In this document: in pieces, positions 4,089-54,104 of the stretch | How positions within the stretch are numbered: position 1 is the first letter of the stretch | Layout of the letters: each line of letters begins with the position of its first letter | From: Podarcis filfolensis | Taxonomy: Eukaryota | DNA length: 64,000 nt | Strand: one strand, 5' to 3' | NCBI GenBank assembly: GCA_964270895.1 | Contig: OZ185440.1 | The notes under the pieces: model-generated | The model's database searches: none | Told to the model about the DNA's origin: nothing | Seen by the model: the letters and a program-made list of their open reading frames with translations, nothing else | Translations under genes and position numbers: made by a program

Positions 4089-4761
4089 TCAGGGGGTTGA
4101 GAAGACAAGGGGGTAGCCAGAATCCTGGACCATGCTGGTAATGGAAACAGACTGTACTACAGGGAATAGTTGTTAAGAGATGTGAAAGTGGTTGGGGAGA
4201 GGCTTCCTATGATGTACTCTGGGGGTGGGGGACCTCTGGACTGGGGGCCAAACACAGCCCTCCAAACCTCTCCATCTGGTCCTTGCCATACACCCTCCCC
4301 AGGCATGCCCCTCACTGACCCTGCGTCACACTCTCTTTGAGTGTTTTTGCCTGGCTGAAATGTGTCATTGAACTCTGATAACGCCTTACACATGCCTGGG
4401 TGGAGGATAAAAAAGTGGGGGGGGGGTGTAACTAGTCAGCTGTACAAAAGGTAAAACATTAACATTTGCTGCTCTGCCATTTTTGCTTCAGCTGCCACCC
4501 AGTACTGGCATCTGTTCCCTGAAAGGTTGTCCAGGGGAGAATACAGCCTGTAGTCTGCAAATGCTCTCGACCCCTGGAGCACACTTTACTTCTGCCCAAT
4601 TTTCACTGATAAAATGGGTTTTCCAGTTCTGAAACTGGAGAAAACCCTGCAAACCTGTTTACCGGAGGTGAAAAGGAAGGAGTAAATCATACAAAGGGGG
4701 GGGGGGAGAGCAAAGATTGCTCTTTCAACCTTTCAAGAAAGCTTGCAGCATTTTACATTTT

Positions 4762-5264
4762 TTAGTTTAGAGAAAAGGCGAGTAAGAGGTGACATGACAG
4801 AAGTTTATAAAAGTATGCATGGTATGGAGTAAGGGGATAAAGAAGGTTTTCTTCCTGTCTCATAACACCAGAAGCTGCAGACATCCAATGAAGCTGAATG
4901 TTGGAAGATTCAGGACAGATGAAAGAAAGAAAGAACTTGTTCACAAAGCACATAGTTAAACTATGGAAATCTCTCCCCTAGGAGGTAGTGATGGCCACCA
5001 ACCTGAATGGTTTTTAAAGATTAGACAAATTCATGGAGGAGAGGGCTATCAGTGGCTACTAGACACAATGGCTATGCTCTGTCTCCACAGTTGGAAGCAG
5101 TAATGCTTCTGAATATCAGTTGCTGGAAACCACAGGAAGGGAAAGGGCTCTTGTGCTTGAATCCTGCCTGTGGACTCCCCGTAGGCACCTGGTTGGTCAC
5201 TGTGAAACAGGATGCTGAACTAGATGGGCCATTGGCTGGATCCAGCAGGCTTTTCTTATGTTCT
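4762..5264 (+). mobile_element. CR1 LINE 3' end with 3' UTR
   Basis: tttagtttagagaaaaggcgagtaagaggtgacatg (end of ORF2), then ggatgctgaactagatgggccattgg...cttatgttct terminus. Confidence 0.8.
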
Positions 5265-5692
5265 CTGAAGAAGCTATTGTCTGCCTTCAACCTTTATTAA
5301 GTAGCAGATTTGAAGGCGTACCAAGACCCAAGTGTACCTCCTTCCAACATCAATGCCTGCAAAAGCTGCCCAGATGGGACTCTAGATTATGACTGCTGAC
5401 AGAGACGGGCTGCTTGAGTTCTGTTTCCTTAAAAGTTTTTAGAATGGTAATGTGTTTAAAGGCTGATTTGCAAGGCTTCTCAGAATGTGCTCAAGTGATT
5501 CAGTGAAAAAAAACCCAGTAAGGAAACCATGAACTCTTTGGGTCACTGAGTCCACTAGAATGATACCTTCTAAGTTATTCTGCCAGCTGGAACATGGTAC
5601 AGTTACTTGGCATCACATGAAACGGGGATTTGAACCTCAGGTCTGATGCACTGAGAATTTTGTTAGCGTGAGGTGCTGCTAACAACACTTAC

Positions 5693-14576: not shown

Positions 14577-15102
14577 CCGTATTTTTCGCCCTATAGGATG
14601 CACCGGCCCATAGGATGCACCTAGATTTGGGGGGGGGGGAATAAAGGGGGGGGAAATTATTCCCCCCCCCCAGGCGCGGGGCTGGGGCGGGGGAAGCCCG
14701 AGCTTCCCTCGACCCCAGCCCCCAGAACAGGAGCCAGAGCAATGCCGAAGCTGAGCGCAGCTTCGGCATCGCTTTGGGAGCTTGCGCGGCTGGGGGCGGG
14801 GGAAGTCCGAGTTTCCCGCGACCTCAGACCCCAGAACAGGTCCCAGAGTGGCAGCTTCGGCATCGCTCTGGGAGCTTGCGCAACCTTCGGAAGCCGGCCT
14901 TCGGGGGATTGCGCGGAGCTGCGCCGATCCCGGGAGCGCAGGCAGCTCTGCGCAACCCTCCGGAGGCCGGCGCGGCTTGGCGCCGGGCTCCGGAGGGTTG
15001 CGCAGAGCTTCCTGAAGCCTGTATTTGCCCCATAGGACGCACCCACATTTCCCCTTCGTTTTTGGAGGGGGAAAAGTGCGTCCTATAGGGCGACAAATAC
15101 GG
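14577..15102. mobile_element. Young Tc1/mariner-superfamily (Tc2-like) non-autonomous element, 526 bp
   Basis: TA TSD at 14575-76 and 15103-04; TIR CCGTATTT(T/G)TCGCCCTATAGGA(T/C)GCAC at both ends; CpG-rich interior. Confidence 0.88.
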
Positions 15103-30739: not shown

Positions 30740-31360
30740 CTGCAATTAGAAAGAATCCTTTTGAGTGGCCCCCGTGAGGCAACACTGGAGAACTAACCCT
30801 TTCCCTCCCACTCTTCTCAGTAGCAGCAAATTTTGGTGTTTTCCTGTAGATTCAATAAGCCTTCTCGCACCTTAGGACACTTAAGCTTTTTGGCCAAACT
30901 GTGCTGCCACCTTCCCCGCTTTGTCATAGACTGTGTACAAACTATATATTTAAAGCACGTTCAAAGTATATTCTTTCTCTGGGCCCTGTAGTTTGTTATG
31001 GGTTGCTAGGATTTTTAACACTGCAAGAGGTAAACTACAGTGCCCTGAGTTCTTTGAGGAAAATAATGTGTTCCGATTGTACTGTAAAGGTATAGTGTGT
31101 ACACAGCAATCTTCAAAAGGTAGCAGTTATAAGGCACTGTTTCTTCACAGAAGCTGCCTGTTCAGTTTGCACCAAAGCAACAATTCTTATCTGGAAACAG
31201 AAAATGGGGTATGTGTTTGGAAAAAAAATGCAGTCATGCAAACTCCATGCCCGCCCCCATCCAAAAAATTATAAGCTCAGGAAGGTAATACTGACCAGGT
31301 CATCTCTGACCTGTTTTCTGCCATAGAGGTTCATTAACTGATCACAGGGGAGGCGCTTAC

Positions 31361-40035: not shown

Positions 40036-41460
40036 GGTATAAATTGTTTAAATAAAGGAAGAAATATCTGTTTCTTCTAGAGCCTTTATGGACTGCTGTT
40101 GTTTAATTCCTGTGTTTTATTCCTGCTATTTTTAATATTTTATGTATTTCTTTTAGATTGTATTTTATTTTACTACTTATTTTTGTAAGCTACATCTAAT
40201 GTTTCCTGAAATGTGAGGTGATAATGATAACAATGATCATTATAACAGAATGATGATAGATTTTGCATATATAAAATGTATTGAAAATATGACATCCAAG
40301 CCAATATCAATAAGCAGACCGTGAAAGCAGACTGTGCAAATGAGCAAAATGCTCCAAACTGCAGGAGAACTCCACAATTTCCCTGAAGGGCAAAGCAGAA
40401 ATATGTGAAGCAGACCAGCATCCTGGTGGCACCCATTCAATCTTAACAGTTTATTTAAATGTAGTGTTTACCCTGACATCTTCACCAGACTCTAATCTCC
40501 TCACAGATCAGAGGAACCTCCACAGAAGGAGCATCTCTCTGAAATCTGCTCCAGCCAAATGTCTGAATTTATGAAACAGTCACCTGCAGATAAAAACATT
40601 TCTCTGCTAAACCAGCCCAATTGCTTCTTAAGTATTTAGCGTTGCTGAGTAAGATAAATGGGTTTTAGGAAGGCAGTGGCCTTAATAAAAAAGATTCAGC
40701 TGCTGCCACTGCTTGGGAGCACCAGAACCAATACAAGCAGAGCTAACACTGGCAGCTGGTATTTATGCTGGCTGCAATGCCCTTACAGCATTTCATTTTA
40801 GTCTTCATCATGACTCTCTATAGCCACTGTCTCTCTGCCCATGTCTGCAGTTTTGGGGGAGAGAGCTGTGATATGGATTACTTGGACTAGCCCTATCCTG
40901 ACATTTATTTCCCCTGTGTGTGAACTGTCATGGTAGTGAAGATTTGCCCTAGAACCACATACACACGCCTGCTGAATGCACAATAATTCTTCACTTCAGG
41001 TGTCGGCTTTTTTGTTTTTTTTTACCAATGGATATCATGTGGATTTTGCTAATAAAGCCAACTTAAGTGGTTACAGAATCCTTGTCTCAGAGGAGAGGTT
41101 GCTATTATTCTTGTTCTTTGGTGTGGAGATGGCTAGTTCTAAAGACATATTTATGTGCTTGTGCTATCTCAAGCTGCTGTCAGAGACTGCTGAGCTAGAT
41201 GGACCACTGGATTTGACTCATCCACAACATGCATTTAAAGCATAGGGCTTTCCCCAAAGAATCCTGGGAATTGTAGTTTATCCCTCATAGAGCAAAAATT
41301 CAAACTACAGTTCCCAGAATTCTTTTTTTTTTGGGGGGGGGGAGACACCATGTGCTTTAAACATGTGATATAAGTATAAGACAGCTGCCTATGCTCTTAT
41401 TCTATTCTGAAGGCTTGCAACTTTTTAACATGGCCCATCTAGACCAGCATCCTGTTGGTG

Positions 41461-41577
41461 GGCAGGAGCAGGGATCGAGCAACGGGAGCTCACCCTGTCG
41501 TGGGGATTCGAACCACCAACCTTCTGATCGGCAAGTCCTAGGCTCTGTGGTTTAACCCACAGCGCCACCCACGTCCC
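41461..41577 (-). mobile_element. Sauria SINE, 5' ~117 nt only (3' truncated)
   Basis: GGGACGTGGGTGGCGCTGTGGGTTAAACCACAGAGCCTAGG...GGTTCGAATCCCC...; near-identical to the heads of the two full-length copies. Confidence 0.9.
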
Positions 41578-41579
41578 TT

Positions 41580-41621
41580 TGGTCCTTTGAACCGGAAACG
41601 AACCAGCGACCTAAGGATCTA
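41580..41621 (-). pseudogene. Retroposed 3' half of mature tRNA-Tyr(GTA) with CCA
   Basis: TAGATCCTTAGGTCGCTGGTTCGTTTCCGGTTCAAAGGACCA versus vertebrate tRNA-Tyr TAGATCCTTAGGTCGCTGGTTCGATTCCGGCTCGAAGGA+CCA (3 differences in 42 nt; reference recalled from memory). Confidence 0.85.
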
Positions 41622-41822
41622 AAGACATAGTAACACCCAAATGAATTTTGTACCAAATTATTATACCTAGATTATTCTTGTGGTTTAAATTAATTGTGAG
41701 ATGCTAAACACAATAGGGAGGAGGGTGTAACCTGACTTCAAAACAGTAACTCTAAGTACTGGAAGACAAATCCACCCTTTTCTAATTGATGGGTAAATTT
41801 CAGATGCTTCCTACACATTCAT

Positions 41823-42170
41823 GGGAACGCAGGTGGCGCTGTGGGTTAAACCACAGAGCCTAGGACTTGCCGATCAGAAGGTTGGCAGTTCGAATCCCTG
41901 CGACGGGGTGAGCTCCCGTTGCTCGGTCCCAGCTCCTGCCAACCTAGCAGTTCAAAAGCACGTCAAAGTGCAAGTAGATAAATAGGTACCGCTCCGGCGG
42001 GAAGGTAAACGGCGTTTCCGTGTGCTGCTCTGGTTTGCCAGAAGCGGCTTAGTCATGCTGGCCACATGACCCGGAAGCTCCCTCGGCCAGTAAAGCGAGA
42101 TGAGCGCCGCAACCCCAGAGTTGGCCACGACTGGACCTAATGGTCAGGGGTCCCTTTACCTTTACCTTTA
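41823..42170 (+). mobile_element. Full-length Sauria SINE
   Basis: tRNA-like head with A box TGGCGCTGTGG and B box GTTCGAATCC; (ACCTTT)n tail; 11-bp TSD TACACATTCAT at 41812-41822 and 42169-42179. Confidence 0.95.
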
Positions 42171-44378
42171 CACATTCATATTTCTCCTTACCTACATATA
42201 CGAGGGCTAGGAAATCTTGTTCATTTTTGTTCTCTAAACTGATTATTGCTTCCTGAAAGCTCCCATATGTAATTTTAATACATAATCTTAAGTATGTATG
42301 GGATTGTAAGAAATGGCAGACATTAGCTTCATTTTCCTATAGTCATCTGAATAAACTGACCAAGTTTATTTGTTCCATCTATATAGTCTTTGTCTCTATG
42401 CCTCTATGTGTGAACATTTCCATAAGGAGGGAAGCCTGTGGTTGCAAATCAGACAGTCTGAGAAGAGACTCTACCGTTAGATGTCTTATTTGATACCACA
42501 CAGTATCAAAGTACAAGGTGTGAAAACAGCCCAGATCCAATCCAAGGATGAACTGAGCCAGGATTGGCCTAAGGCATGAGCTCTACAAAATACTGTGAAG
42601 TATCTCAGCCGGAAACTGGATGATCACATAAGAAATAAATGAAGCATGGCATCAGGAAGTAAATCAGAATGAAGCAATGCCAGGGCTAGAGGCAAGCAGG
42701 GAAGCAGGAATGGTCAAATCCAACTTGGTCTGCATCTGAGCAATGAGTTACTCAGACTGTGTAGCTAAGCTAGAGACAGCAGGTTTTTATATGGCCAGGT
42801 GGAACCCTATTTGGCTTTTGTGTTAGGTAATTCCAGGAAGCAGGAAAGTGTGTATATGGTAAGGCAGTCCTCCTGGTCCCAAGTAATATGACGGACGGAT
42901 GGGTAGTTGAAGGGGGAAGGGGAGGAGTGGGAAAGGGCATTCTTTACCCAAAGCAGCCTGGCAAGCAAACCTCCCAGGTGGTCTGAAGATTCCCTGCCTC
43001 TGTCTCCAAGGTCCAAGTGAAAGACAGTGGTAGAGTGGGATGAGGTGGCAGTCTAACCTGCCAGGCTCAGAAATATTACATAATTGGTTCTTAACTCTGT
43101 TGGGACTCGCTCCCAGTCACATGGCTGAGGAATATCAGTCAATAAAATGTGCATGATAAAAGCACTTAGCACTGTAGTCATAGGTAGGGAACAAAAGAGG
43201 TATGGGGGGCACAAGGAAATGTTTCCCCATCATAAGGTCTCAGTTCCCACCTTCAACAAGGTCAACTGAACCTATGGAACCCCTTTCTATATTAATTTAC
43301 CCTGGAAGGGAAGTAGGATAGGAAGAATCTAGGAACTCAGCAAGATATGGCAACAGACTACTATACTGCATTTCTACCTTTCAAAGGCCAGATATGAAGG
43401 GACATTAGCTAGCCTCTGATCTCTGCCATATGGGGAAACACTAATGCAGAGACATGCCCATGAAGGACAGGAGACCATGGAACATGCACTTGCAAACTTA
43501 GTGTTCTAAAAGAACAGTGGTGAAATCTGTTCTTAATGCCCAGGAAGGTTCATTTTCTCTCTAACAGAGGACTCCCTCCCCCCAGTTCAAAAAGCAAATG
43601 CAATCAAGTTATTTCATTTAGAGGAGATTAACAGCATAGTTTACTTGGGACCAAATCTTTAACCCCAAAGACCAAAAGAACACGGCAGCAAGTTGATGAT
43701 TAATTTCACCAGCCTAAAGGACAACTTTGAGGAAATTGGAAGAGGCATTGGGCTGCTTCACAAATACAAAAATTCGACAAAGTCTGTAGGAATCATGATG
43801 GTCTAAGCTGAGCAGTGAAGTCTTGAGCTAGCAGGTCTTTGTCTCACTTTATTCCCCCCCTCACTCCTTGTTGGGGTAGGTTTGGGTTGTATGTGGAGTG
43901 GGTAGTGGTTGTATGTGTGTTGGGGGGTTGGGGGGTTGGCTGTGCTTTACTCCCTGCTGAGAAAGATGCAAATGAATCAAGTGTTGTATTAATGAGATAT
44001 ATTAATTAGTCAACATAGCTCTCCAGTAATCCTATTGGGTTCCATTCAAACAGTCTAGCTCACAAATGATCACACCTAGACTGCAACTGTAGAAGTCCCA
44101 GAAACGTCTGCCTTGTCCTGCTCCCTGATACTCCCAGTTCATTCCATCTCAACCCTTTTCACATCGTTCTCTCCCAAAATTTGTTTAGGCTCTCAACTAT
44201 AGTAAGGAAGCCTGTAACAAAGAAAATGCATGTTCTTTGCCATAATATAGCTCTTTCTCTCTAACCATATAAAGTGAAAAAGCCCATGACAAAGCAAATA
44301 CAGGCCCTTCTCCAAAATATATTATTTATCTGTCTGTCCATGCATGCATCCATCCATCCCACTCATACCCGGATATAC

Positions 44379-53165: not shown

Positions 53166-53745
53166 CTGAAAGCAAAAAGCACAATGTCAGTAATTTGATT
53201 AGTGCAAATGCTGTAATGTGCAGAGCTATAAAGGAGGCTTAGATGCTTGCTAACATTTTCCTTTAAAGGCAGAAATCATTTCATAGTCAAGAACGTACAT
53301 TTTTATATTACACATTACCATATATTGCTTGAAGTGCTTCTTAATGGAAGAGTAAACACAGCAATCATGTTATTAGATGTGCTCAAAGCACTTGCTGGCA
53401 GCTGGCTAAATAAAGGTAATTTAAACAAGGAACCAAGTCAGGTTTTCTAAAGCAGAAAGGGTTATTCAGCTGAGGTACACTTTAGGAAGCCAGGTTCATG
53501 GCCTTTTCGGAAAGTATACAAGGGCAAAAGTAGTTCCATGTCTACTGTTGCTGCAAGAGCAAGAATATGTGGACTGCAGGGACATGGGGCAAGCATATAT
53601 TTGTGGTGGGATGTTAAGGAACCCAATCCTGTTATGAAAGTTCCGAGCATTAACAAGAAAGCAGAACTACTCTAGCACAACTGATCACATCAGCCATTTA
53701 TCCAAAAAAGATAAATTTGTGGTCAGTACTGTGTTCTATTACCTT

Positions 53746-54104
53746 AAAGGTAAAGGTAAAGGGACCCCTGACCATTAGGTCCAGTCGCGGACGACTCTGG
53801 GGTTGCGGCGCTCATCTCGCTTTACTGGCCGAGGGAGCCGGCGTACAGCTTCCGGGTCATGTGGCCAGCATGACTAAGCCACTTCTGGCAAACCAGAGCA
53901 GCGCACGGAAACGCCGCTTACCTTCCCACCAGAGCGGTACCTATTTATCTACTTGCACTTTGATGTGCTTTCGAACTGCTAGGTTGGCAGGAGCAGGGAC
54001 TGAGCAACGGGAGCTCACCCCGTTGCAGGGATTCGAACCGCCGACCTTCTGATCGGCAAGTCCTAGGCTCTGTGGTTTAACCCACAGCGCCACCTGCGTC
54101 CCAC
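53746..54104 (-). mobile_element. Full-length Sauria SINE
   Basis: Reverse complement of the 41823 copy with scattered differences; (AAAGGT)n tail on the plus strand; 12-bp TSD TTCTA(T/C)TACCTT at 53734-53745 and 54105-54116. Confidence 0.95.

Follow-up and report, generated by a model that had tools for sequence, protein, structure and literature searches.

How does the 3' end of a mature tRNA come to stand in a genome directly before the first base of a SINE? On the minus strand of the DNA studied here, a stretch of 64,000 nucleotides that is called the window below, the last part of a tyrosine tRNA is followed by two A's and then by a Sauria SINE. At tRNA position 58, the place of the modified base m1A, the DNA reads T. 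This raises two questions, namely how the two parts were joined, and whether the T is the trace of a modified RNA base.

The arrangement is probably the result of one old retrotransposition of Sauria SINE RNA by its LINE partner Bov-B (of the RTE clade), in which the enzyme made a template jump to tRNA-Tyr. The evidence for this is given below, along with the other ways in which the locus could have come about.

Methods

The window does not contain a single N. The tRNA part was compared with a published 40-nt capture oligo for human tRNA-Tyr-GUA (PMC12268536), which is the complement of positions 37-76 of that tRNA, CCA included. The reference is therefore this human oligo, and the source bases at positions 59, 65 and 68 are assumed from human tRNA-Tyr-GUA. 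Contigs of four other, related organisms (A, D, E and F) were placed on positions 40600-42600 of the window. The coordinates of all features are collected in Table 1.

Table 1 Parts of the chimeric locus, its surroundings, and the reference copies used. Positions are those of the window.
Feature	Position	Strand	Basis or remark
TTT, at -12 to -10 from the 5' direct repeat; supplies the Tn of the Tn-TA signature	41639..41641	-	read from the letters
5' TSD copy TATGTCTTTAGA, begins with TA; its last 4 nt (41621-41618), TAGA, are tRNA-Tyr positions 35-38	41618..41629	-	exact 12/12 repeat
Secure tRNA-Tyr-derived part, positions 39-76	41580..41617	-	37/40 to the published oligo; single copy in four other organisms
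CCA, post-transcriptional	41582-41580	-	end of the tRNA-Tyr piece
AA linker, from the tRNA CCA end to SINE base 1	41578..41579	-	read from the letters; in a neighbouring full-length SINE, GT (2 extra nt) precedes base 1
Sauria SINE head, exact base 1 to about position 121-126	41452..41577	-	91% identity to two full-length copies; last 3-5 nt ambiguous with the end of the palindrome
Palindromic MITE-like repeat, 274 bp; right outer end is the 27-nt CR1-like piece	41181..41454	.	three nested inverted repeats
Degraded SINE continuation, about positions 119-161, with a 10-nt gap; ends at the 3' direct repeat	41150..41180	-	alignment to a full-length copy
3' TSD copy; opens with TATGT (5 nt), similar to TAGGT of the SINE at about positions 157-161	41138..41149	-	exact 12/12 repeat
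Full-length Sauria SINE, TSD (T)ACACATTCAT, TTT 12-14 nt upstream	41824-42170	+	reference copy for the head
Full-length Sauria SINE, TSD AAGGTARTAGAA, extra GT between TSD and base 1	53745-54102	-	reference copy for the head
CR1 LINE, end of ORF2 and 3'UTR, TTCTTATGTTCT-type tail	4760-5270	+	reference for the CR1-like motif only

The tRNA piece and its junction with the SINE

Read from the letters, the minus strand from 41621 to 41580 is the 3' part of a tyrosine tRNA with a terminal CCA. The human oligo has only one match in the window, at 41580-41619 on the plus strand, where 37 of its 40 bases agree; by chance, no match is expected. This match includes the CCA and bears out an earlier note on this DNA, which had recognised a tRNA-Tyr 3' part with CCA on the minus strand. 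The three mismatches are A58>T (41598), C65>T (41591) and G68>A (41588, a CpG site). The note was also right that T58 is the only transversion among the three.

To our knowledge, CCA is not encoded by eukaryotic tRNA genes. Because it is nevertheless present here, the source of the piece is an RNA. ARAGORN finds no tRNA at the locus, and Rfam no match at gathering score, because the fragment is too short for either.

Positions 35-38 of the tRNA are contiguous with position 39, which would agree with the removal of an intron between 37 and 38, yet these four bases are also the last 4 nt of the target-site duplication (TSD) described below and may come from the target site. Because TAGA also ends the TSD, the tRNA-derived part is certain only from position 39. 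Depending on how positions 35-38 are read, the insertion holds the last 38-42 bases of tRNA-Tyr.

The CCA and the SINE are linked by AA at 41579-41578, as noted before. The first base of the SINE is 41577. Both full-length copies in the window start at this same base, where they adjoin their own TSDs. In the four other organisms homology is lost at 41577/41578 in hundreds of contigs per organism, which continue into unrelated flanks. The full-length copies and this break in homology establish the exact 5' end that had been claimed for the SINE. The claimed length of 117 nt has to be revised, as the alignment gives about 121-126 nt. The tRNA-Tyr part and the SINE have the same orientation, both being on the minus strand, and the 5' part stops at the 3' end of the mature RNA. 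Together, the tRNA-Tyr piece, the AA and the SINE support a retrocopy of a CCA-ended tRNA-Tyr joined to a SINE.

As a separate observation, the full-length SINE on the plus strand is inverted relative to the SINE head of the chimera and lies 250 nt away, and the pair forms a long hairpin. An Rfam hit to MIR7533, the sole hit at a maximum E-value of 10, was rejected (15.9 bits where 230 are needed); it is the hairpin of the two inverted SINE heads.

Target site

An exact 12-bp direct repeat, TATGTCTTTAGA, is found at 41629-41618 and at 41149-41138 (12 of 12 bases), and flanks 468 bp. This single TSD encloses both the tRNA-Tyr part and the SINE. Exact 12-mers that recur within 600 nt are found at 24 of the 64,000 positions in the window, most of them in tandem arrays. 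Given this background, the chance of such a repeat at this boundary is about 0.005.

Insertions of Bov-B and of Sauria SINEs have a Tn-TA target signature (PMC13295347). The signature is present at the 5' TSD as TTT-N9-TA, with the SINE TSD starting with the T of TA. T runs are found at similar distances upstream of the other two SINE copies in the window. The upstream flank was also considered as an old CR1, and this was rejected, as a weak likeness over 15 nt is all that BLAST gives.

Where the tRNA part begins, a join of the cDNA end and the upstream target end by 4 nt of microhomology is the best reading. Joining by microhomology is common for LINE-made cDNAs. Probably the cDNA extended to position 35 at least; had it not, the four matching bases that continue the tRNA would be a coincidence of 1 in 256. 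The cDNA may also have gone beyond position 35, or a 3' tRNA half may have served as template, as has been proposed for tRNA/L1 chimeras. Use of such a half can also be the cause of the end-point.

The earlier note let the tRNA homology stop next to position 34 and explained this by a stall of the enzyme at a modified G34. The homology does end at position 35, but the stall is not supported, since positions 35-38 overlap the TSD. The boundary coincides with this 4-nt overlap of tRNA and TSD, and nothing at the locus points to a stall. In the literature consulted, RT-based detection of queuosine is said to depend on chemical treatment or a special polymerase.

The palindromic repeat and the end of the SINE

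The SINE head is followed by a palindromic repeat. Its arms align with one another and with a second copy at about 30925-31110. The repeat at 41181-41454 folds as a single long hairpin (z -4.7), and its core, at 41203-41336, has about 1000-fold depth in the contigs. By eye, no clear TSD of the palindrome is seen, nor an 8-bp duplication of the hAT type; only ACAG/AGCAG is common to its two junctions.

The palindrome evidently entered the SINE afterwards, near position 121-124, and is not a third template, because the SINE resumes behind it where the head stopped. The continuation at 41180-41150 aligns from SINE position 119. Out of 4000 random genomic 36-mers, 14 score as well and start within 8 nt of where the head stops.

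The minus strand from 41456 to 41430 agrees with the CR1 3'UTR copy at 5206-5232 in 25 of 27 bases. The likeness of some 27 nt to the CR1 3' UTR, which the earlier note took as part of the chimera, is therefore there, but it belongs to one arm end of the palindrome. The CR1-like motif is found on the outer ends of both arms of 41181-41454, with the inverted copy 224 nt away. Contiguity with the CR1 3'UTR is limited at the locus to these 27 nt, and the next 35 nt and the tail of the CR1 copy are absent.

The arm-end motif resembling the CR1 3'UTR, CTAGATGGRCC, is present in both arms of 41181-41454 and absent from the copy at about 30925-31110. The C10A10 run at 41333-41352 was considered as a poly(A) tail and rejected, since it represents an expansion of the CCCCAAAG found in the palindromic repeat family. 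In related organisms, 3 nt are missing from the C/A run at 41345.

A canonical Bov-B insertion would be expected to keep the SINE's 3' half, with an (ACCTTT)n tail, up to the 3' direct repeat. The present copy gives out near position 161 of some 345 and has neither, which weighs against the reading as one Bov-B retrotransposition. The SINE ends directly at this repeat, such that TATGT faces SINE TAGGT. The missing half can be explained either by a later deletion between these similar pentamers or by priming inside the SINE RNA, an unusual event, and both fit equally well.

Copy number and related organisms

The junction of tRNA, AA and SINE is found in one 298-nt contig per organism (41552/4-41850), at a depth equal to that of the unique flanks, in four organisms out of four. 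Because of this equal depth, the junction is single-copy and orthologous, and does not belong to a repeat family. An empty site was not seen among the four comparison organisms, all of which carry the insertion.

Within the tRNA part, positions 49, 53, 61, 62 and 63 differ from the window among the related organisms. These differences are mostly of the CpG type, and fit neutral decay. At 41598, 41591 and 41588, none of the four organisms has a listed difference from the window. In organism A both contig differences are located elsewhere, so T58 is certainly common to A and the window. In D, E and F there are one or two contig differences that come without a listed position, and none is listed at 41598. 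The unlisted ones probably lie in the repeat-covered contig ends, where these overlap the SINE.

The locus shows no sign of function and is, taken by itself, a neutral fossil. Some lineage-specific indels were seen around it: 11 nt are inserted after 41362 in D and F, and 10 nt are missing at 42217 in D, E and F.

How the chimera may have formed

The proposed course of events is as follows. An endonuclease would have cut a TTT-N9-TA site, after which cDNA would have been synthesised along the SINE RNA up to its 5' end. There the reverse transcriptase would have added two untemplated bases, which are AA in the sense strand, and would have jumped end-to-end onto a CCA 3' terminus, either that of a whole mature tRNA-Tyr or that of a tRNA-Tyr 3' half. 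At least 38 nt of the tRNA would have been copied, as far as the anticodon loop. On its way through the T loop, the enzyme would most likely have inserted dA opposite m1A58, leading to the T. The end of the cDNA would have joined the upstream target end via the 4-nt TAGA overlap, giving rise to the 12-bp TSD. Later, the SINE would have received the palindromic MITE-like element near its position 121-124. Its 3' half would have been lost by a later deletion, or would never have been made, owing to priming inside the SINE RNA. Since then the locus would have undergone neutral decay.

An end-to-end template jump is suggested because a mature 3' end, two extra bases, an exact 5' end and one enclosing duplication are found together. 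The earlier note had the reverse transcriptase finish the SINE and then jump to the tRNA 3' end. The anatomy is as expected for this, and from it we infer the jump itself.

The same anatomy could also arise with no jump at all, if the 3' end of the tRNA, possibly with an oligo-A tag, had been ligated to the 5' end of the SINE RNA before reverse transcription. For U6/L1 chimeras, two mechanisms are under discussion and ligation of RNAs is among them (bioRxiv 2025.02.02.635956); the AA could then be a short 3' oligo-A on the tRNA. A plain SINE copy in the window also has extra 5' bases (GT), which rather fits untemplated addition by the reverse transcriptase. It is moreover established knowledge that the 5' triphosphate of a Pol III SINE transcript and the 3' OH of a CCA-ended tRNA do not make a natural pair for an RtcB-type ligase. 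Ligation is thus an unlikely origin. That the tRNA piece and the SINE are two independent, adjacent insertions, or that a tRNA-Tyr gene region was copied at the DNA level, would agree with the non-canonical 3' end of the SINE and with a locus that is clearly rearranged. It is hard to believe all the same: neither part has a flanking duplication of its own, a mature 3' end meets an exact 5' end with only AA between them, CCA is not gene-encoded, and no T run of a Pol III terminator follows the tRNA part.

With the CR1-like piece at its end, the anatomy given in the earlier note can be read as three templates, from the CR1 3'UTR to the SINE and on to the tRNA, with a stall at the bulky G34 modification. 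The 25 of 27 bases shared by 41456-41430 and the CR1 3'UTR copy speak for this, as does the end of the tRNA homology at position 35. From the CR1-like piece, however, the final 35 nt of a CR1 3'UTR and its tail are missing, and the piece is mirrored by the inverted copy 224 nt away in a repeat that forms a hairpin. The SINE also continues behind this repeat, the direct repeat lies 290 nt beyond the CR1-like piece, and positions 35-38 overlap the TSD. Three templates are therefore very improbable. The preferred reading remains the single jump from SINE RNA to tRNA-Tyr.

The base at position 58

The A58>T change at 41598 is followed by a T at position 59, and is the type of mismatch expected for an m1A-U context. 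In the context 5'-m1A-U-3', dATP is efficiently misincorporated, which gives T in the sense strand (PMC4787781); this was found with enzymes for library preparation, not with the Bov-B reverse transcriptase. The R2-derived non-LTR reverse transcriptase of the OTTR method shows high misincorporation at tRNA position 58 (PMC12140624). m1A58 has been detected in 46 of the 47 human isoacceptors analysed.

The 117 nt of the SINE head that lie clear of the palindrome junction have five private changes, each of them a CpG transition. Because of this, a non-CpG A>T is unexpected from neutral decay. Judged by these changes, neutral decay would put a T at exactly position 58 with roughly 0.5-2% probability, while a misread m1A-U would be expected to do so often, with a probability of several tens of percent. 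As far as we know, m1A58 also stands alone in vertebrate tRNA-Tyr, where no other base within positions 39-76 is modified on its Watson-Crick face. The unchanged G37 (m1G) is no argument against a modification scar, because positions 35-38 may come from the target site.

T58 could also be an ordinary point mutation in a real chimera, one that happened after the insertion and before the sampled organisms diverged. There is neutral decay at the locus, as seen from the five other tRNA positions (49, 53, 61, 62 and 63) that vary among the related organisms. The tRNA part departs from the tRNA-Tyr oligo at two further positions, 65 and 68, and in the unique flank about one third of the lineage-specific changes are transversions. 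Against this stand the low neutral chance of a T at this very site, the T that a misread m1A would often leave, and the singular position of base 58 among the modified sites. An ordinary mutation is possible, and we hold it to be the less likely of the two.

T58 is probably a scar of misread m1A58. The misreading was already claimed in the earlier note, and is strengthened by the reported behaviour of dATP in the m1A-U context and by the position-58 errors of R2; one locus cannot prove it. A single substitution at a single locus is inseparable from a mutation soon after insertion. For the more specific claim, that the misreading took place in vivo in the germline and was done by the RTE-clade Bov-B reverse transcriptase, the arguments are in even balance.

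Scars at position 58 in genomic retrocopies were not found in the open-access literature searched, where only papers on sequencing methods came up. If the reading of T58 as a scar is true, the DNA at position 58 has naturally recorded an RNA modification. CCA-ended tRNA pieces at the 5' ends of SINEs and LINEs would then form a genomic archive of ancient germline tRNA modification. The same archive would hold the error signatures of LINE enzymes that were never purified. The idea leads to a concrete genome-wide survey, in which mismatches are counted per tRNA position in CCA-ended retrocopies.

Relation to known systems

The locus is a template-switch chimeric retrocopy, and as such of a known kind. 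For mammalian LINE-1, template-switch chimeras are well documented, among them U6/L1, U3/L1, 5S/L1 and tRNA/L1 (bioRxiv 2025.02.02.635956). As in these, a small structured RNA stands on the 5' side and is fused by its mature 3' end, in the same orientation, to a copy of a retroelement. One TSD and an endonuclease-type target motif surround both parts, again as in the L1 chimeras. Unlike there, the enzyme would here be the reverse transcriptase of Bov-B, of the RTE clade, and on the 3' side a SINE has been copied up to base 1, where the L1 chimeras have a 5'-truncated LINE. The tRNA/L1 chimeras mostly have positions 1-37 in antisense, which is explained by twin priming, whereas the present locus has the 3' part with CCA in sense.

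The non-LTR reverse transcriptase of R2 is described as jumping end-to-end between templates with the addition of extra bases, which is exploited in OTTR (work cited in PMC12140624). The likeness to the event proposed here is as follows: the 5' end of an RNA is reached, a few untemplated bases are added, and synthesis goes on at the 3' end of another RNA, with misincorporation at position 58. That work concerns an insect enzyme in vitro, while the event here would have happened in vivo, in the germline, and with a different LINE clade.

In mammalian tailless (3'-truncated) retropseudogenes, a few complementary bases are common to the 3' end and the target site, which is explained by priming inside the RNA. 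The locus resembles them in that the normal 3' tail is missing and the 3' end overlaps the target site (TATGT versus SINE TAGGT). The tailless retropseudogenes are L1-driven and mostly derive from 5'-complete small RNAs, whereas here a later deletion accounts for the missing half of the SINE just as well.

With canonical Sauria SINE insertions, the locus has in common the sequence of the head, the exact 5' end, a TSD of 10-12 bp that starts with T(A) and, some 10 nt upstream, a run of T. It differs from them by the foreign tRNA-Tyr 3' part upstream, the palindromic insertion inside, and the lack of an (ACCTTT)n tail. No report of template-switch chimeras for the Bov-B/Sauria SINE system was found in the open-access literature searched, where Bov-B chimeras led only to an unrelated paper on an insect SINE.

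If the enzyme was indeed of the RTE clade, the locus shows that such an enzyme can copy a SINE RNA to its last base and then hop onto the CCA end of a tRNA. A hop like this is the type of accident that is thought to create new composite SINEs.

Other repeats in the window

Further exact 12-mer direct repeats less than 600 nt apart are found at 1180/1375, 3573/3761, 34082/34166 and 44833/45085. These pairs may be target-site duplications of other insertions. The count of recurring 12-mers also reveals a tandem array at about 14685-14870, with a spacing of 94-109 nt.
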